Position numbers and translations under genes: made by a program. DNA of 63,825 nucleotides, counting the filler, from Octopus bimaculoides (Eukaryota), in NCBI RefSeq assembly GCF_001194135.2. It is 9 parts of 8 records of this genome, joined end to end, with 100 filler letters (N's around TTAATTAATTAA, not from the genome) between each part and the next. Parts side by side here need not be neighbours in the genome. Positions count along the whole stretch, not along the records: positions 27,007 to 37,239 come from NW_026382286.1; 8 more parts are not named here. One strand, 5' to 3'. The notes under the pieces were generated by a model. It saw only the letters and a program-made list of their open reading frames with translations. It was not told the DNA's origin and searched no databases. Position 1 is the stretch's first letter. The number at the start of each line of letters is the position of its first letter. Positions 26,907 through 37,239 of the stretch are shown here, piece by piece.

Positions 26907-27019
26907 NNNNNNNNNNNNNNNNNNNNNNNNNNNNNNNNNNNNNNNNNNNNTTAATTAATTAANNNNNNNNNNNNNNNNNNNNNNNNNNNNNNNNNNNNNN
27001 NNNNNNAATAATAATAATG

Positions 27020-30000
27020 ATTTCATTTATTTGCCACCAGGGTGAAGGATGAGGGGAACATTACAGAGACAAACATAAAGTATGGGGGTTTACACATAAT
27101 AATGAAATGATAAAAAAGAATTTTTTAAGTATACACTGGAAAAAAGACACATACATAGCATACAAAGGAAAAACAAGAAAGGTGGTGGGGGAGGATGGCT
27201 CTCGTGATACAGGAACACCTCTAGGGATAATCGAAGAACCCAATTGTCCAAAATGTTCCTGAAACCCTAGGAGCAAGTGCCCTCTCCTATTCCTTTTCTC
27301 CGACTCACAGGTCTACACTTAGAGAGGTACCATCCACTCTTGCCATTTTCGCATCTTCCACCCACCTTTCAATAAACTTACTCGAGGACAGCACTTCTCT
27401 CTCCACTCTCAATTTCCTTATCAAGTGAAACTTGAAAAAGTCAGTGAGAGCTCTACCAAAGAGGAATGTATCAGTCCTCATGCCTTTCAGCCTTGACCAC
27501 CAAACAATCTCTTTTGCCACTGCCACCACGCAAAAGAAAACTGCCTTGCTTGCCCAGTTGAAAGAGGGTGGCGGTCCAGTTATCACTACAGACTCGGTTG
27601 ATAGATGGATCCGTCCCACACATGACAGCAGCTGTTCAACATAACCCCACAAGGCAGCAACGGCCAGACAGTGAACGAGGCTGTGCAGAACGGTTTCATC
27701 ACTGCGCGCACCTCATACAAGTCCGTCTGACAACACATCTGTGCCTGTAAAGTTTGTCTTGAATCAGGCCAAAGAAAGCTGGAGATTATCCATGATAGTT
27801 CCCGACTGGAATGTCCTCCGCAACAGACAAGCTAGTTCATTCTCATCGGTACCCAGAGTCTCCTAGAGAATGTCATCGTACTTCCCTGCCACTAATCCTC
27901 TATAAATTTCTAAAGCCGAAGATTCACCGATCCCATTGCTCGACTGGTAGAGGGTTATGAGTGCCTGATGATATTCTACGTGCCAGGTGCCCAGTCTCTG
28001 TCTTTTCTTCACCCAAGACTGCAGCTCTGTCAAGGAGATGAGCTGTGGAAAGATGAGCCTCACAAACGGGGCCTACACATGCTCACCATCCAGAAATCGT
28101 TGCAGGTGGCATAATCTAAGTACGTGTCTGCACATTAAGAGTCACGTCATACGTAATCCACAACTCAGAGGATGCTGGCAACAGACTACCACCTGACCAT
28201 TGGAACGAGTTCCTTCCACAAGAATTTAAATAAGAGACACTCTAACCTGGTCAATCAGTAACCGGGTCAAGGCACAACGGTCAGGCGATAAATGATAACG
28301 GAAGCAATGTAAGCATTCACCATCTCTACTCGACCTTTCAGGGACAGCTTTCTTTCAGCCATTTCTGGGTAAGACTGGCCACTCTGTCTGCCACCTCGTC
28401 CCAGTTCTTATCAAGTTGGAATTCGGGACCAAACCAGACCCCGAGCACTTTCACTGGTCCGTCAGTCCAGTGTCCAACGTTGCTATCTGATGGCATCGTC
28501 CTGCCTCCCCAGGAGCCCAACCACAAACCCTGCAACCGACTCATTTCAGAGGAGTCTGACACCATGACGGTGACATCGTCGCATATGCTGACACTGCCTT
28601 TCCTTGTCTCAGTTCGAAAAGGATGCCCCTTAGCTGTTCCAATTTCTGCAACAGTGGCTTGAATGCCAATACATATAGAAGAGGTGACAGTGGGTAGCCC
28701 TGATGGACCAAACGTGCAATGCCAAATGGCTTCGATAGGTGGTCATTTACTTTGACCACAGAACAGGTGCTGCTGTGCATGGCAGTAATCCAGCCTCTGG
28801 AAACGGGTCCGAAACGGTCTGCTTTCAGGACAGCTTTCAAGTAGTGATGGTCGATACTTTTGAATGCTCTTGCTTGATCCAAATGAATCAAGCACCCCTG
28901 AAGCCAGCTGTGGTCTCAGCCCTCTCTATGATGTACCGCATAAGGTGGAGGTTGTCGTGGATTGCGAATGTTTGCACTTCCCTGACCAGGCTACCGACGA
29001 CTAGTGCCAACCTTTTCACTAACACCTTGGCCAAAATCTTAAACTCTGTATTTAGCAGAGTTATAGGCTGAACATTCTCTAGTATGTCCCTATTGTTGGC
29101 ATCCTTCCTCAGCTGAGTCACCACACCTCTGCTAACAGCACTAAGAATTCTCTCGTTCTGTTGCCAGTTGCAGTAGACATGTGCCAAGAGGTTGCCAAAC
29201 AAATCTGGCAATGAATACATAAGGCAGGCCATCCAAACCAGGCGATCTGCAACTTGTGCAATTGATCATCACCTCCCAAATTACGGTGGCTGTTATTGGC
29301 ATTACACATAACTTTGCGTCAGCTGCCAAGAAATGTGGCAAACCATCCAGGTACAAACTAAAGTCCAGTACTGTCATCAGTCCATTGCCCTCTCCAAACA
29401 GCTACGCGAAGTGCTGCTGAAAAGCCACACACACCTGCTCAGAATCGCGTAGCACGCACCCATTCCGATCCGTCAAAGACCTGATCATAGTTTTGTTTCC
29501 AAGTCGTGTCTCCATCGTTTGAGCCCATCAGACAGCTGTGGTTCATTCCTGTTTGAGTGCATGGGCCTTAGCTTTAACAGTGCAACCTTCGTGTTTCGCT
29601 TCGAAGAAATGATCAAGGATCATTCTTGCCGCTAACACATCAGTCGCAATACCTTTTTTAATCACCTCTTCTAATTTGCTAACTATTTCACCCTCTAATC
29701 TATTCCTTTCTATTGCTAGCTCTTCGCTAAATGCTATCAATTCTTCTCTAATCTCAGTCTTCAGGGTGGTCCGCCACCGATTGCTGACGATTACCTCCGT
29801 CAACTGCTGCTTAACTAGTTTGCTAATCCGGTCTCTGTAATTTTTTCGAGCTGGAAAGGATGCGTTCAACTTCCAGTAACTGGGTCTCTATCTACGAGTC
29901 CTATCTAATTCGACTGTCAAGATCACAAACTTGTGGTCTGTGTAGCCAATCAACTTAAATTGTGGACAACCTATACTATACCTGTCCTCTGACCTAACAA

Positions 30001-30345
30001 ATATTCTATCTAGATACCATCTGGATGACTCATTGTTGTTGCATCATGTCCATACTAGCACATCAGGGAAATCCAGTCCATACCTATCAGACAATTGGAA
30101 GTCTCTGAGCAGGTTTTCAAGGTTTTTGCATCCCCTTCATCTGTGTACTATCCCCACACAGTCCTTCCGGGCATCCAAAATCCTGTTCCAGTCCCCTACT
30201 AGAACTAAACTGTGAGACATTCCCAGGAAAGTTTCTAGACACCTGAAGAATTCTGGCCTTCCAGCTCCTGTCATAATATCTCATAGTCATTGAAAATGGG
30301 CGCCAATGCTTGTGCATTAGAAATCCTTGTCTCACTAATTGCAGC
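27020..30345 (-). mobile_element. L1/Tx1-clade non-LTR retrotransposon ORF2 remnant (APE endonuclease + RT), pseudogenised
   Basis: APE motifs GDWN, YLDRI, TDHK, YWKLN. RT motifs GLDGLPY, PITLLNTEFKILAK, DQARAF, HQGYPLSPLLY, VKVLGVWFG. C-terminus ...LSVDL*, then AATAAA and an (ATT)n tail. Confidence 0.9.
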
Positions 30346-30352
30346 CATATAT

Positions 30353-30385
30353 GTTTGTCTGTCTGTCTGTCTGTCTGCTTCCCCC

Positions 30386-30439
<54 letters not shown>
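30353..30439. repeat. (TGTC)n(CT)n(TA)n compound microsatellite
   Basis: Direct sequence. Confidence 0.9.
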
Positions 30440-30441
<2 letters not shown>

Positions 30442-30464
30442 TCTATTAGCTCTGTGCTTTTTTT

Positions 30465-32600
30465 TTTGTCACTATCAAGGTGGTGAGGAGCAGAGCACCC
30501 ATCACCTATAAAATGCTCCAGTGGCCTATGCAAAACCTGTCTCCTGACAGTCAAGCCCAACTTCTTCGCCAAACCAACAGGAGAAGTGTGGTAAAAGGTG
30601 AGTGTCTGGTGCCTTCAAATAACCAGTGCTCCGAGTAGGCTGTACTCATTTGCCTTGGGTGGCAAGCAGCCTAAGAGAAAGAAGACTCTGAGTCCAAAAC
30701 CAGAGGAGCAAGGACCCTGTCGCCTTGGCATACTATCTTGATAGAGATGGTGTTTTGGTAAAAATACTGGTTTGTAGTAACCCAAACACACCTCATTTCT
30801 TTTAGTGAACATGCCAAGCAAAATAAATGACGATAACATTGTGAACGGGACTGGAACCAATGGGGAAGGTGCCATACCCGGCAGGTACTCCACTGTGCAT
30901 CAGGGTGGGCCCAGTCATAATCCCTCAACTGCTATCCATACTACAAGGCATAGTACTTGTACTGGTCAAAATATGCAACGTGCTCACAAACGCAAGTGGT
31001 CTGTGATATGAAACAAAAGGCGATCCAGTGCCATGAACAAGCCTTGCTAGACAAGAACAATGGCAAATGTAAAGCTGACGGAAAAAGATCATTAGAACTT
31101 TGGAACCACCTGGGTATGTTCCAGATTATTGAAAATGGACTCATGAATCAGGTAAGAATAATTCGGAAAAGAAGCTTTCTTAATGAGACCCAGGTTCAGA
31201 CAGTCAGGAAAAGCCACTGTAGTGGTGATAATCTCGAAGAGAATAATATAGGTGAAGATCAGTGAATGCTTAGCCAAGGAGAAGTTGTAGTGGAGGAGAG
31301 GCTAGCCAATCAATATAATGTAGAAAACCCTGAAGTACAAGAGGATATGACTGAAGAACAGAGACACCTCAGGATAAGACTCGAGCAAGTAATAATTACA
31401 AGAACAGAGACCAAGCCGGTGAAGTTAAGAAACTTCGACCGTAACAATGTGAAACGTGCAACCCAAAAAGTTGATGAAATTATGAAATACATTCTGACAA
31501 AAGATCTGATCTGCTTCAATTTTTGTAAGTAAACTGGTTAGTAAGAAAGAGGGGAAAGTAGACGAACAGAAAGAGCCATGGTGGAAGCAGAGAATTGAAA
31601 GCATTGTTCTAACTTTGCATAAAGATCTGAGCCACATAGAAGAGTGGTCCAAAGGACAATGGAAAAATGGGAAAAAAATGCAAGAGTATATGTTGACGCA
31701 AAGTATAAAATAGAAAAGAAATTGTTCAAAATGGTTGTCGAAACCCTAAATGCTGGCAAAACATTAAAGATGTAGTGCTACATTGATCGCATATCGCAGT
31801 TCCAGAAAAACAGGTTATTCTCAAATATCCAGAGGCAGTTTTTTTTAAGGGCCTAGGAGGAAATACAGAAGATAATACGGTTCCTGAAACAGAAGAAACC
31901 CATCAATTTTGGGGTAACATCTGGGGGCAAGAAATTTCCCACAACCACGGTGCTGAGTGAATTAATTCCATGAGATCCAAACTCCACCACCCAGAGGCTC
32001 CATGACAGGCCTATGTGCACATAACAATAGAAGATGTCATTGCATAGTTATCAAAACTACCAAACTAGTTAGCGGTGGGACCAGATGGAATTCAAGGCTA
32101 CTGGCCTCAGAGGTTAATGTCAACACACAAGAGAACTGCTTACAAAGCAGTGCAGTTCCGGAGTGGATAGTAGAGGGAAAAACAACATTGTTAATGAAAG
32201 ATCGGTCGAAGGGCAATGAGGCTGGCACTTACTGACCCATTACTTGTCTTAACCTCCTGTGGAAAGTATTAACAGGTACCCTCGCAAGGAAAATATATAC
32301 GTTCCTTGAGGAAAACAATCTACTGCCAGTAGAACAAAAGGTATGTAGAAAAGGACCGAAGGGCATCAAGGACCACCTTGTGATTGGCAAGGGTATAATA
32401 GGCAAGAGTGTAATAGGCAAGGGTATAATGAAAAACTGTAAACGGTATCAAAAAAACTTATGCATGGCCTGGGTAGACTTCAAAAAAGCTTACAACTTGT
32501 TGTCGCATTCATGGATTTGGAAACACTCGACATGTGTGGAATAGCTGAGAACGTGTGTGCACTGATCAAGAACAGCATGCCTAGTTGGAAAACACGTCTT
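30465..32600 (+). mobile_element. R4/Dong-like retrotransposon 5' portion (leader, N-terminal domain, start of RT), disrupted
   Basis: ORF start MPSKIN..., KRKWS, NQVRIIRKRSFL, KYIDRISQFQKNRLF, WIVEGKTTLLMKD, PITCLNLLWKVLTG, EQKVCRKG, AWVDFKKAYN. Truncated before (AAT)n at 32645. Confidence 0.85.
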
Positions 32601-32645
32601 TCCATCGGAATTTGAACTCGGGACGTAGCGGCAAACGTCCAGTGC

Positions 32646-32684
<39 letters not shown>

Positions 32685-33919
32685 NNNNNNNNNNNNNNNN
32701 NNNNNNNNNNNNNNNNNNNNNNNNNNNNNNNNNNNNNNNNNNNNNNNNNNNNNNNNNNNNNNNNNNNNNNNNNNNNNNNNNNNNNNNNNNNNNNNNNNNN
32801 NNNNNNNNNNNNNNNNNNNNNNNNNNNNNNNNNNNNNNNNNNNNNNNNNNNNNNNNNNNNNNNNNNNNNNNNNNNNNNNNNNNNNNNNNNNNNNNNNNNN
32901 NNNNNNNNNNNNNNNNNNNNNNNNNNNNNNNNNNNNNNNNNNNNNNNNNNNNNNNNNNNNNNNNNNNNNNNNNNNNNNNNNNNNNNNNNNNNNNNNNNNN
33001 NNNNNNNNNNNNNNNNNNNNNNNNNNNNNNNNNNNNNNNNNNNNNNNNNNNNNNNNNNNNNNNNNNNNNNNNNNNNNNNNNNNNNNNNNNNNNNNNNNNN
33101 NNNNNNNNNNNNNNNNNNNNNNNNNNNNNNNNNNNNNNNNNNNNNNNNNNNNNNNNNNNNNNNNNNNNNNNNNNNNNNNNNNNNNNNNNNNNNNNNNNNN
33201 NNNNNNNNNNNNNNNNNNNNNNNNNNNNNNNNNNNNNNNNNNNNNNNNNNNNNNNNNNNNNNNNNNNNNNNNNNNNNNNNNNNNNNNNNNNNNNNNNNNN
33301 NNNNNNNNNNNNNNNNNNNNNNNNNNNNNNNNNNNNNNNNNNNNNNNNNNNNNNNNNNNNNNNNNNNNNNNNNNNNNNNNNNNNNNNNNNNNNNNNNNNN
33401 NNNNNNNNNNNNNNNNNNNNNNNNNNNNNNNNNNNNNNNNNNNNNNNNNNNNNNNNNNNNNNNNNNNNNNNNNNNNNNNNNNNNNNNNNNNNNNNNNNNN
33501 NNNNNNNNNNNNNNNNNNNNNNNNNNNNNNNNNNNNNNNNNNNNNNNNNNNNNNNNNNNNNNNNNNNNNNNNNNNNNNNNNNNNNNNNNNNNNNNNNNNN
33601 NNNNNNNNNNNNNNNNNNNNNNNNNNNNNNNNNNNNNNNNNNNNNNNNNNNNNNNNNNNNNNNNNNNNNNNCTACCCTTTCAGATATACTTTCATTGTGA
33701 TTTCTGCAATGTGGTGCATAAATTGTCAAGTAAATGAGACGCATCTTTGCCTCCACTGATTCACTTGCAAAGTGTTGAGTAAAATTATTTCGTTGCAGAC
33801 CTCCTTTGGGTCTTTTTATTATCACTGCGACACACATAGTCCCCAGTTGGTAACATTGATTTCAAGGCCCTCCTAGATGAGAGACTGGCATTCCACTTAA
33901 TGTCTATGTTCCATGCTGG

Positions 33920-34051
33920 CATGGATTGGAGAGTTATTAATGTAGAAATATGGTATCGTAGCTACTAACAGTTGAGGGTTGCGTAGTCTAGACGGCGTTT
34001 TTAGATTTCATTATTCTCTTTAACCCGGGCAAAGCCGGGTATTTCTGCTAG
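33920..34051 (+). mobile_element. Helitron 3' terminus (5' boundary uncertain)
   Basis: GC hairpin ACCCGGGC AAA GCCGGGT (34023-34040), then 7 nt, then CTAG (34048-34051) followed by T. This is the canonical Helitron 3' end. Confidence 0.65.
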
Positions 34052-34470
34052 TATATTATAATTTTTCTATCAATAATTAGGGAGACAATCCATTGACTTA
34101 ACCCTTCTCCTTTGACAGTGCATTCAACAAGTAGCTGTGGGGTCTTTTCCCCCCCTCCATTTTGATGAGAAGTTATAGGACACTGACCATTAGGGTTTGA
34201 AGAAACGCTGTAAAGGTAAGCGCTCTATGAATGTAAAACCCAGGGCAACCCCATATACCAGTCATAACTATCTTTACCTAAGTACTATACTGCTCTTTCG
34301 GATTTATGATTTAATGACGATATGTGTGTGTGTGCGTGCGCATGCGAGCATGTGTGTATGTGTGTGTGTTCAACATTTTCTCATATATTTAACTATTATA
34401 CAGTGTTCTTATTAACCATTAATGCATAATAAATCCGATGTAATTATATCAGAAAACAAACAACACTTAC

Positions 34471-34654
34471 CAAGGAAACCATTCTTGTTACATAACCTCT
34501 CAGTACAACAAGTAACACAAGAAGGGCCATTAAACCATCTATGGCATGTAAAGATATTGTTCTTTGCAGCATCAATGCATTTTCTGTATGTACTGCAGGA
34601 TCTTTCAAACTTCTGAGTAACACCATTCATTGTTGACATGTACTGGCACACAGG
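34471..34654 (-). CDS. Exon of Ly6/uPAR (LU, three-finger)-like protein, C-terminal part of domain
   Basis: Acceptor TTTTATATTTACTGCTGCAG, donor G|GTAAGT, 184 nt, phase 0 to 1. Reads PVCQYMSTMNGVTQKFERSCSTYRKCIDAAKNNIFTCHRWFNGPSCVTCCTERLCNKNGFL, with the CCxxxxCN LU hallmark. Confidence 0.85.
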
Positions 34655-35691
34655 CTGCAGCAGTAAATATAAAAGTCATTTACTACTACTACTACAACTA
34701 CTACTACTAGCAATGATAACAACAACAACAACAACAACACATGTAATGCTTAACATGCGAGAAAATAGAATCGTTGCTCCAAAAATTATCCAAAGAACAA
34801 CAAATGAAAGGGAAGTGTTGAAAGATATCTGCGTAAGCAATCTCTTTTAAAATTTATTGATGTTTACCACTTACAAATAATACAGAGTCCAATGTTTTCA
34901 TACCACGAGTAAATATGACAATCGAAGCACAACGCATATGAACATCACACGTCTCTTTCACCCACCGTCAAAACCAAAGTTTCTTAATTGTGGAATGCAC
35001 ACAGTGAATTTTTGGCATAAAATGTACACAAAATTCCCACGTACACACTTCATCTGTACCAGAAACTAACACAACTGTACCTGTTGTAAAGGATGATAGT
35101 CTAAATACATTGTCAGACCCAAGTCTTCAGGTCTTGCAAATATAACAGAAAATGCATAAATGGCACAAGAGGAATATATTGACCTTGGCTGGCGTCCCAT
35201 TAGAAATTAGCATGACTACATCAATGAGAATGGATCTCCAACTAAAGGTATCTCGCATGGCAAATGTCTCCACTGCAGTTGTAACGTCTGCCTTTTTCAG
35301 TTGAAATAATTTCCTCTGATATTGCACAACTGACATGAGGGAAGGTTTTGTCGACTTTGTAATCAGATATACATAATTTTACTCTTTACTCTCGCTCCTG
35401 CATTGCTATTTGGTTTCACAAACTGATGATCCAAACTGAAAGGATCATCCGAAATGATCATACGAATTGCAATTCGGTTTTAGGAAATGACTATCCGTCT
35501 CTGGCTTCAATTGTCACAAGCTTTTTGTTCCACTGAGTCAAGGATAGGAAGACAGAGGGGATATCTATATCTACATAAGCACCAAAAACAATTAGCAAAA
35601 GCCCGGTACAAGCTACTTGATCATACTAGCTTGCGAGTGACAGATATGGATATATTTTAACAGAAAGGAAGAAAGTAACATTTCAGTTTAC

Positions 35692-35783
35692 CTCTGCTCC
35701 TGAACAAGTTGTCACTTCTGAAGCATTGCACATCACTCCTGAACATGTTTCACACAGCAAATTCCGTTGAAATAAGGAGTAAT
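35692..35783 (-). CDS. Exon of Ly6/uPAR-like protein, N-terminal part of domain
   Basis: Acceptor TTTACTTATACTCTGTAG, donor GAG|GTAAAC, 92 nt, phase 1 to 0. Reads YSLFQRNLLCETCSGVMCNASEVTTCSGAE and joins in frame to 34471-34654. Confidence 0.8.
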
Positions 35784-35904
35784 CTACAGAGTATAAGTAA
35801 ATATCCATATTTAGAAACCAAATTGTGTAATGTTCAGCAATAACAAGTAAGATTTACTTTGTTATGTAAAAGAAATATATACGTGTTAGTATTGGAATCA
35901 ATAC

Positions 35905-35962
35905 ATGTTAGACATACAAGACAACAAATTCTAAGGAAGATTATAAACATTTTTATTTTCAT
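35905..35962 (-). CDS. Candidate first coding exon (signal peptide)
   Basis: ATG at 35962 gives MKIKMFIIFLRICCLVCLT plus 1 nt. Weak donor T|GTATTG and a 121-nt intron. Phase matches exon 35692-35783. Confidence 0.35.
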
Positions 35963-36144
35963 TTGGAAATGTTTCCATTATGACACATATTCAACTAAGA
36001 AAATGATGAAAGCTACTTGTTACCCGTTTCCCTTAATATTCTGCTCTCAAAAATATGTGAAAACTGTGGAACAACTCAAAACATAGACTATATTATTAAA
36101 ACAGAAAGAACACTGTAGATAATATAATCTTCGAAAATCTCAAT

Positions 36145-36232
36145 CGAATGCCTGATGGTCACAGCTGGAATGTTCATGATCATAAGCTGGCCCAATCAAG
36201 GCTCACCTGAGACTAAACAAACAGCTTTGATA
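36145..36232. mobile_element. Short interspersed repeat D (LINE/SINE 3' end with AAC tail)
   Basis: Reverse-complement match to GTTTAGCCCCAGGTCAGTCCTGATCCAG...GTTCCAGCTGTGACCATC copies at 38712-38800, 39622-39815, 42445-42530 and 56845-56945. Confidence 0.6.
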
Positions 36233-36519
36233 TTAAAAATATTTACAAGTCCCATACATACATACATACATACATATATATATTGTATATATACATACGT
36301 ATATATAAATGCGTAAATCTATCTATTGGCAGACATACATATACACACAGGATATTATGGTGTGTATATATGCACAACAAATAACCAGTTATAGTAGTGT
36401 TCAATGTATCATATTGCATTAAATTCCCCAAATCAAACGTGAAATGCATATAAATGTGCAATGATGCATATGCATAGAGTTTGAAATAGACTGTAATACA
36501 TGAACTGAGCAAAACACAT

Positions 36520-36780
36520 TTGAAAGATATCATAGTAATTTCATGGATTTTTTCTTTCCAGAATCCCATTACTAGTGTTGCGAAAGTTGGTGCAACTTTC
36601 GTTCTCATTTCCATGACCAGTATCTGCATGCATTAATGGTTATCAAAAGTGATTTTCTAACATCATTCATAATCCTTCAAACATAAATGAATTGTTAAGT
36701 CTACACATAACATCCAAAGGTACATCTTTTTCCCTCTGATGAAATTATACTCATATCACATAAATGTAAATTTAATGTAC
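36520..36780 (-). mobile_element. Penelope-like RT fragment
   Basis: MQILVMEMRTKVAPTFATLVMGFWKEKIHE resembles the PLE RT motif QxxGTAMGTKxAPxYAxLxMGxxE. Confidence 0.65.
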
Positions 36781-36895
36781 AAATTTGTTATTAAAGTATT
36801 GAGTACCAATTGAAATGGCTGTAAGAAGTGAAGATGATCAATTTGTTGTTAATAATAAACAATTATTAACTTCTTAATCTCCGTTTTCTTTTCTT

Positions 36896-37239
36896 CAGAG
36901 AATGAATGGGAGAAAGAGAGCCTGCCGTATGTCAACCCAACAGAGGGACCAGCTATCCGAGTTGACAGTACCAGGGTAGATAAAGCAATTAAGAGTATGA
37001 AGACAGGGAAAGCCCCCGGCCCATCAGGAATCACTGCAGAGATGCTCAAAATATCTGGCAGTGTTGGTTACAGCCTAGTCACCCGTATTACGAACCAGGT
37101 GATACACGAAGGAGTCATACCTAATGACTGGTGTAGCAGCACCATAGTAAACTGCTACAAAGGTAAAGGTGACGCTTTAGATACTAATAATTACAGAGGC
37201 ATCAAGCTGTTAGATCAGGTTATGAAAGTTACGGAGAGG
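36896..37239 (+). mobile_element. RTE LINE RT fragment (subdomains 0-2)
   Basis: KAIKSMKTGKAPGPSGITAEMLK...IPNDWCSSTIVNCYKGKGDALDTNNYRGIKLLDQVMKV. Confidence 0.9.

Follow-up and report, generated by a model that had tools for sequence, protein, structure and literature searches.

We examined two minus-strand exons in a 63,825-nucleotide stretch of Octopus bimaculoides DNA (assembly GCF_001194135.2; the window), where they lie in the piece taken from NW_026382286.1 and together encode a Ly6/uPAR-like (LU, or three-finger) domain with 12 cysteines. The piece makes up one end of the 28.7-kb contig LGKD02087416.1, which stops 7.4 kb downstream of the two exons. The domain is probably a module of a mollusc-wide family of leucine-rich-repeat (LRR) adhesion G-protein-coupled receptors (GPCRs) that has expanded in octopus, with the locus in the window being a fragmentary model of one paralogue. 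With more reserve, we also lean toward the view that a Lynx2-type LU domain is a fixed and conserved ectodomain module of the mollusc LRR adhesion GPCRs, placed between the LRR cap and the part of the ectodomain that holds an α/β domain, HRM, and GAIN. For the window itself the result is mainly corrective. A first-pass annotation made from the DNA alone had described a hidden gene; the peptide is in fact already modeled by NCBI with 100% identity (LOC106878889, P0001, a 160-aa O. bimaculoides "uncharacterized protein"), but that model is most likely a mis-modeled fragment of a receptor, and the 160-aa models available for two octopus species are best regarded as partial.

A Lynx2-Type LU Domain Split over Two Exons

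The two LU exons, their splice sites, and the intron between them are located as follows.

35783-35692, minus strand: exon A, the first LU exon, preceded by ...CTCTGTAG and followed by GTAAAC
35785-35784 and 35691-35690, minus strand: AG acceptor and GT donor of exon A
34655-35691, minus strand: intron between the two LU exons, 1037 bp, GT...AG
34654-34471, minus strand: exon B, the second LU exon, preceded by ...CTGCTGCAG and followed by GTAAGT

The first 2 nt of exon A finish a codon opened in an upstream LRR-cap exon; the remainder, which closes in phase 0, encodes YSLFQRNLLCETCSGVMCNASEVTTCSGAE and contributes the first four cysteines (Cys1-4) of the LU domain. Exon B opens in the same phase, encodes PVCQYMSTMNGVTQKFERSCSTYRKCIDAAKNNIFTCHRWFNGPSCVTCCTERLCNKNGFL plus 1 nt, holds Cys5-12 together with the CCxxxxCN signature, and ends in phase 1. 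This signature occurs once in the window, against 0.03 occurrences expected. In tblastn searches, both exons are matched by P0001 and by 10 family members. Exon A shares 79% nucleotide identity with positions 5811-5931 of the O. sinensis contig L001, and the boundaries of exon B are identical in that species (L001 7658-7843).

The first-pass annotation had proposed these two exons with canonical sites and matching phase, the 35692/34654 junction, a 12-Cys peptide, and a three-finger fold. The exons and the junction were confirmed to the exact position, the junction being present in the public model, and the joined translation includes the 79-residue peptide with its 12 Cys. The fold assignment also holds, although it took a family of sequences to recover it. 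Neither Pfam nor phmmer gave a significant match to the single peptide; the fold is detectable only with a family profile. Even for 19 family members, the Pfam matches are sub-threshold only, reaching 7e-4 for Activin_recp (6 of 19 modules), 4e-3 for Toxin_cobra-type, and 0.014 for UPAR_LY6, with Toxin_TOLIP also among the sub-threshold matches of single members. Taken at their gathering scores, curated models of the UPAR_LY6 type, to which the first-pass annotation had pointed for an HMMER check, therefore gave no confident match, whereas the family profile does match solved LU structures. Searched against the PDB, a 19-sequence profile of the module (A2) matched human LYPD1/Lynx2 (6zss) best, with E 3.4e-5, aligning profile positions 8-86 with chain positions 2-86. 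The other 15 PDB matches of the profile are all three-finger proteins and comprise LYPD6, LYPD6B, snake three-finger toxins, ACVR1, SLURP-1, TGFBR1, and Lynx1. A match of the single peptide to an amoebapore (phmmer against the PDB, E 0.47) was set aside as spurious.

Structure prediction corroborates this assignment. An AlphaFold2 model of the module, built from the alignment, has a predicted local distance difference test score (pLDDT) of 77.8 and a predicted template-modeling score (pTM) of 0.68, and all of its top 50 Foldseek matches in the PDB are three-finger folds. The best of these is Lynx2, with template-modeling scores of 0.64/0.67 and a root-mean-square deviation of 2.8 Å across 81 columns. 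As is usual for small domains, the E-values from Foldseek are weak, none being below 0.07. The model also places a helix right after the sixth Cys, similar to the unusual Ser51-Gly61 helix of Lynx2, so that in both Lynx2 and the octopus module a helix follows this residue.

The cysteine spacing specifies the subtype. It is 2, 4, 7, 6, 16, 5, 10, 8, 2, 0, 4 followed by N in octopus, compared with 2, 8, 8, 7, 16, 5, 10, 8, 2, 0, 4 in 6zss, so that from Cys5 onward (x16, x5, x10, x8, x2, CC, x4, CN) the octopus module has the same spacing as human LYPD1 and its 12-Cys relatives LYPD6 and LYPD6B. The Cys pattern is also conserved: of 28 family modules, 25 keep all 12 Cys. In Lynx2, the four core disulfides are supplemented by one in loop I and one in loop III (Paramonov et al. 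2020, PMC7582953). By alignment to Lynx2, the octopus bonds would be C3-C26, C19-C43, C49-C72, and C73-C78, plus C6-C11 and C60-C69 (79-mer numbering). The two exons encode an LU domain of the Lynx2/LYPD1 type. The suggestion in the first-pass annotation that 12 Cys imply an extra disulfide was right, but the layout is that of the known LYPD1/LYPD6 subtype and is not new.

The octopus module differs from LYPD1 in its shorter loop I and head (4, 7, 6 versus 8, 8, 7), and its sequence identity to the 6zss chain in the Foldseek alignment is only ~18%. A larger difference lies in the context of the domain. Lynx2 is a single-domain, GPI (glycosylphosphatidylinositol)-anchored protein with its own signal peptide, whereas the octopus module sits within a multi-domain ectodomain and has neither anchor nor signal peptide of its own. 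In this respect it resembles the ectodomains of TGF-β/activin receptors (Activin_recp), which also place a three-finger domain with a CCxxxxCN-like ending in the ectodomain of a signaling receptor. These domains, however, have another Cys layout and match the octopus module more weakly than LYPD1 does, and they belong to single-pass kinase receptors rather than GPCRs.

In the gene model P0005 (195 aa), a partial LU copy corresponding to the exon B portion of the module precedes a complete LU module, reflecting either an internal exon duplication or a modeling artefact.

A Mollusc Family of LRR Adhesion GPCRs

An exhaustive HMMER search with a two-sequence profile recovered 35 relatives, all of them molluscan; a word-indexed protein search had given only 2 to 4. 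The first-pass annotation had suggested a search for orthologues and tandem paralogues, and relatives are indeed plentiful, but there is no tandem LU copy at the locus: a search by the CCxxxxCN pattern gave one match per locus and none extra. Most relatives align over profile positions 1 to ~155, and they do so inside proteins of 268-1283 aa. NCBI exon 1 and the two LU exons therefore behave as a single conserved unit.

Read directly, the relatives begin with a signal peptide, an LRRNT, and an LRR array, the last LRR of which ends in ...EDGAFLFLPSI..IDL.NN. This is followed by a C-x-C...C...C segment equivalent to NCBI exon 1, by YSLFQRN and the 12-Cys module, and by a segment of ~110 aa starting from WTNSFVFHL. 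Long members continue through a Cys-rich segment resembling HRM and a GPS motif into seven transmembrane helices (7TM). Pfam searches of the relatives returned LRR_8 arrays, LRRNT, HRM (weak), GPS, and 7tm_2, as well as Death in P0019, and the window module matches proteins with GPS and 7tm_2 at E 1e-78 to 1e-24. Source names of the relatives include adhesion GPCR G6, GPR126-like, A3, and chaoptin X4 (O. bimaculoides, O. vulgaris, and Argonauta hians), and a fragmentary paralogue is already named "ly6/PLAUR domain-containing protein 1-like" by NCBI. Gastropods (Nucella, Babylonia) and a scallop (Mizuhopecten) supply more distant members, and some gastropod and bivalve relatives are labeled hypothetical proteins. 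An intron-free Logan contig of 4.2 kb (run SRR21372857) carries the whole architecture in a single 1155-aa open reading frame (ORF). Since this ORF is uninterrupted, the architecture exists as mRNA.

The segments on either side of the LU module are less readily named. The position and four-Cys pattern of the cap fit an LRRCT, and distant members read NPLKCNC and NRIVCDC here. The ~110-aa domain after LU is predicted by AlphaFold2 with a pLDDT of 82; in Foldseek it gave only generic ferredoxin-like α/β matches (MscS cytoplasmic domain, aIF2α), and its profile had no match in the PDB. Its position and topology would allow a guess that it is a SEA domain.

Two database entries connect these sequences to a described receptor expansion. 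Of A0A0L8GYR2 and A0A0L8FLR8, which fall in the clusters of P0018 and P0019, one has a single match to SSF57302, which we take to be the "snake toxin-like" superfamily, at residues 136-215, exactly over the LU module; the other has a Death domain. Both entries are listed as "group 3" in the supplement to Ritschard et al. (2019, PMC6408891). That study describes group 3 as an octopus-specific expansion of adhesion GPCRs in which 5 of 22 members carry LRRs and a Death domain occurs once, with rapid duplication, signs of positive selection, and expression enriched in axial nerve cord, suckers, and skin (PMC6408891). The window module is homologous, at E down to 1e-78, to proteins of group 3, among them LRR-bearing members and the Death-domain member. 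The authors report LRR, GPS, 7TM, and Death and leave LU undiscussed, the domain surfacing as a single SSF57302 line in a supplementary table (PMC6408891); as a 160-aa model lacking a 7TM, the window locus would not have been in their dataset. We found no description of an LU domain in adhesion GPCRs in the searchable literature. In P0019 (O. bimaculoides, 1283 aa), the cytoplasmic Death domain occupies residues 1203-1277 after the 7TM, with a long Ser/Thr/Gln-rich repeat before it.

Vertebrate ADGRA2/ADGRA3 (GPR124/GPR125) and ADGRG6 (GPR126) share with the octopus family a class B2 7TM with GPS and HRM, and NCBI labels octopus-family paralogues "A3" or "G6". The ADGRA receptors resemble the octopus family further in having an N-terminal LRR array with a Cys cap, which in ADGRA is followed by an Ig domain, and ADGRG6 has CUB, PTX, and SEA domains. 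The octopus family instead carries LU and the ferredoxin-like α/β domain where ADGRA has Ig and ADGRG6 has CUB/PTX/SEA.

A full-length receptor of this family runs from a signal peptide through LRRNT, LRR array, Cys cap, LU, ferredoxin-like α/β domain, and HRM to GAIN/GPS and 7TM, with one paralogue adding a C-terminal Death domain. In such a receptor, the LU module, set between the LRR array and the GAIN/7TM signaling unit, may provide an extracellular surface for a ligand or partner. Together with the LRRs it could recognize a partner carried by another cell, a matrix component, or something in the environment. Adhesion GPCRs usually signal by a tethered-agonist mechanism via GAIN, and binding could be passed on in the same manner, by engagement of the ectodomain, GAIN, and exposure of the tethered agonist. 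If this is correct, a GPCR has incorporated, as its unit for recognizing ligands, a fold best known from free toxins and from GPI-anchored proteins that modulate receptors, with contact chemosensation or neural adhesion as possible roles. In the octopus-expanded LRR adhesion GPCRs, a previously unannotated stretch of ~90 residues is an LU domain of the six-disulfide Lynx2 type, a defined and expressible candidate binding module for an orphan family. It represents a third deployment of three-finger domains, beside free or GPI-anchored proteins and kinase-receptor ectodomains.

The Locus in Two Octopus Species

The features that frame the LU exons at the O. bimaculoides locus, and the corresponding later exons in O. 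sinensis, are given below (window position = 50210 - L002 position).

L002 10001-10150, outside the piece and ~4.3 kb upstream of exon A: LRR-cap exon, encoding MMCACHLPALVNYMNKTYNKAVNVKGECRTGLSNNQTKAIPILAYSQCN
35784-37239, minus strand: 3' part of the ~4.3-kb intron between the LRR-cap exon and exon A
34412-34470, minus strand: sequence after the exon B donor, GTAAGT and then intron sequence, which in the NCBI model is the tail GKCCLFSDIITSDLLCING and a stop
O. sinensis L001 8114-8152, 9204-9260, 12638-12790, 14440-14643, and 14970-15140: later-domain exons, all on the same strand and in family order

The only models at these loci in both octopus species are 160 aa long. The NCBI model for O. 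bimaculoides takes the MMCACHLPALVNYMNKTYNKAVNVKGECRTGLSNNQTKAIPILAYSQCN cap as exon 1 and reads through the GTAAGT donor of exon B to the stop at 34412. The O. sinensis model (LOC118760947, P0002; 66% identical to the spliced peptide) uses this donor and splices to a further exon. Positions 34412-34470 are probably not coding, and relatives splice here to the exon opening (G)WTNSFVFHL.... Both models also appear to start too late. Upstream of the NCBI ATG, an acceptor (ACAG, then T) is kept in both species, and the frame is open from this acceptor to the ATG, reading DLRDNND in O. bimaculoides and DLKGNND in O. sinensis. These residues correspond to the last-LRR ends IDLRNNKNM and VDLSGNKDM of relatives. 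With NCBI exon 1 as the apparent LRR cap, the 160-aa models are most likely fragments. LOC106878889 is most likely a fragmentary model of one adhesion-GPCR paralogue with a C-terminal tail that results from intron read-through, and the window copy would be, or would recently have been, part of a full-length receptor gene.

The O. sinensis contig L001 retains more of such a gene. LRR exons lie upstream of its LU exons, on the same strand and in family order, at about 133-303 and 3040-3123 (tblastn), and the five downstream exons, which served as a positive control for the downstream-domain profile, reach the HRM-like region before the contig ends. On this contig the next two exons follow exon B at distances of 0.27 kb and ~1.4 kb; at the O. 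bimaculoides locus, the second would fall in an interval occupied by an assembly gap. In the exon directly after the LU module (L001 8114-8205), one frame gives GWTNSFVFHLIF and a different frame gives FKGFMKNLAENISRAV and then GTGAGT, while the family consensus is a continuous GWTNSFVFHLIFKKFNEYKISAENISRAM. The O. sinensis NCBI model stops here because of this apparent frameshift, which is either an assembly indel or a real lesion.

A repeat was also noted ahead of exon B in this species. At L001 6842-7687, a 141-bp intronic unit occurs six times with 98% identity, each unit containing the exon B acceptor along with the initial ~33 nt of the exon itself (PVCQYRLSMN). The last copy alone runs into the full exon B, leaving five decoy acceptors. 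The array may have arisen by recent tandem duplication or may be an artefact of the assembly.

Comparison of the two species shows that the LU exons are under purifying selection. In blastn alignments of the O. bimaculoides and O. sinensis DNA, only exon A, exon B, and short flanks of exon B align; of the 1037-bp LU intron, only the last ~78 nt can be aligned. Flanks of 80-100 nt have 56-74% identity, compared with a mean of 60% and a maximum of 68% for shuffled sequence. Over the 91 LU codons, the nonsynonymous (dN) and synonymous (dS) rates are 0.19 and 0.72, giving dN/dS = 0.27 (Fisher p = 1.2e-5), and the upstream cap exon has dN/dS = 0.37 (p = 0.02). All 12 Cys are identical between the two proteins.

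Several observations count against placing the window locus in this receptor family as one of its paralogues. Degenerate motif scans and ORF lists alone, which could miss a divergent exon, revealed no LRR exon in the 10 kb upstream of the O. bimaculoides cap exon. Over the 7.4 kb that remain before the contig ends, neither family proteins (tblastn) nor the downstream-domain profile detected a further family exon, and neither GAIN/GPS nor 7TM was detected there. The exon that follows the LU module was likewise not found in the window by local DNA alignment with its O. sinensis counterpart or by three-frame reading. No Logan transcript carries the exact protein of the window copy. The cap gives no match to the Pfam LRRCT model at E up to 10, retroelement fragments crowd the region, and there is the apparent frameshift in O. 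sinensis. Finally, P0001 is no closer to the O. sinensis protein than to the O. bimaculoides paralogue P0003 (67% each), and strict orthology of the two loci is therefore not established.

Much of this would be expected of a truncated partial duplicate or decaying pseudogene, in which only the LRR-cap and LU exons were copied and left stranded among retroelements and no receptor is made. The restriction to 160-aa models in both species, the exons missing on both sides in O. bimaculoides, the absence of the exact protein from Logan, the O. sinensis frameshift, and the reverse-transcriptase fragments on both sides of the locus all point in this direction, as does the fast duplication of the family (PMC6408891). 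We nevertheless consider such a remnant unlikely. A dN/dS of 0.27, 12 of 12 Cys, and four intact splice sites argue against it, as do the LRR and downstream exons that remain collinear in the O. sinensis relative. Because the contig is short (28.7 kb), gapped, and ends 7.4 kb downstream, the missing exons are weak evidence, and the frameshift could be explained by PacBio-type indel errors.

A different reading builds on the first-pass annotation, which raised a possible signal-peptide exon and pointed out that LU proteins often modulate nicotinic-type receptors or ion channels. The gene would then encode a small stand-alone secreted or GPI-anchored Ly6/lynx-like protein with such a modulating role, assembled from the two LU exons and the following signal-peptide exon.

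35905-35962, minus strand: proposed signal-peptide exon, MKIKMFIIFLRICCLVCLT plus 1 nt, phase-compatible with exon A

This 58-nt segment does offer an ATG start, a hydrophobic N-terminus, and a suitable phase; the closest solved structure is Lynx2, a nicotinic-receptor modulator; and a Babylonia relative (P0036, 114 aa) contains little beyond the LU module but could itself be a fragment. Equivalent pseudo-exons are nevertheless common, at about 1 per 2 kb of strand. Requiring an ATG, 15-30 open codons, a phase-1 GT donor, and an equally hydrophobic window, we counted 9 such ATGs in 18.5 kb of strand in the piece, so that ~2 are expected in the 4.3-kb intron, and the proposed exon does no better than chance. 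In O. sinensis, the intron holds a TA-rich simple repeat and no counterpart of 35905-35962, which is most likely ordinary AT-rich intron sequence. The upstream cap exon, by contrast, is conserved, constrained, and spliced to exon A in the models of both species. No relative has a signal peptide directly before LU, and every N-terminally extended relative has the LRR cap before YSLFQRN. The 3' side fits a stand-alone protein no better: there is no stop soon after CN, exon B ends at a conserved phase-1 donor from which relatives continue into the ~110-aa domain, and downstream of exon B we found no GPI-signal exon and no conserved hydrophobic terminal exon. A stand-alone modulator is thus very improbable, and nothing links the domain, as an ectodomain module of LRR adhesion GPCRs, to nicotinic receptors. 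The possibility that the exons are chance ORFs with a coincidental cysteine pattern is already refuted and keeps practically no weight. The spliced peptide alone has no significant Pfam match (Activin_recp E 2.8, Toxin_TOLIP E 8.3), as chance would predict and as also counts against a receptor module, but the pattern is kept among 35 homologues, the exons are under purifying selection, and profile and fold searches both match LU domains.

One short reading near the 3' end of the locus was seen by eye. With an AG at 34209-34208, a phase-1 reading of 34173-34209 (minus strand) would add AFLQTLMVSVL and a stop to ...CNKNGFL. This putative tail is short, hydrophobic, and reminiscent of a GPI signal, and it is without a counterpart in O. 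sinensis.

Retroelements and Repeats around the Locus

The sequence beyond exon B is occupied largely by mobile-element remnants and by the assembly gap.

27007-34411, minus strand: downstream of exon B to the contig end, containing reverse-transcriptase fragments and an assembly gap
32685-33671: assembly gap of 987 bp, filled with N and located 0.8-1.8 kb beyond exon B in the downstream direction

Fragments of reverse-transcriptase type occur on both strands of 27007-32684, including an RVT_1 match at 28541-28891 (minus strand, E 9e-8). The neighboring ORFs at 28888-29232 (minus strand) and 30957-32235 (plus strand) have no Pfam match. At the other end of the piece, a plus-strand ORF at 36997-37239 (MKTGKAPGPSGITAEMLK...NNYRGIKLLDQVMKVTER) is cut by the piece edge; by eye it looks like the N-terminal part of a reverse transcriptase of the LINE (long interspersed nuclear element) type, and it has no Pfam match.

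Upstream of the LRR-cap exon, L002 ~2750-9700 contains dense minus-strand retroelement-like ORFs (for example, 7279-7953) together with long simple repeats of the (ATT)n type and others that code for poly-Leu/Ile/Tyr; no ORFs are listed before 2750. Two simple repeats adjoin exon B on the minus strand. A (CA)n-rich microsatellite lies just downstream, at window ~34310-34370, and the exon B acceptor is closely preceded by a (GTT)n(AGT)n run, at ~34685-34735, part of which is shared with O. sinensis (74% identity over 78 nt).

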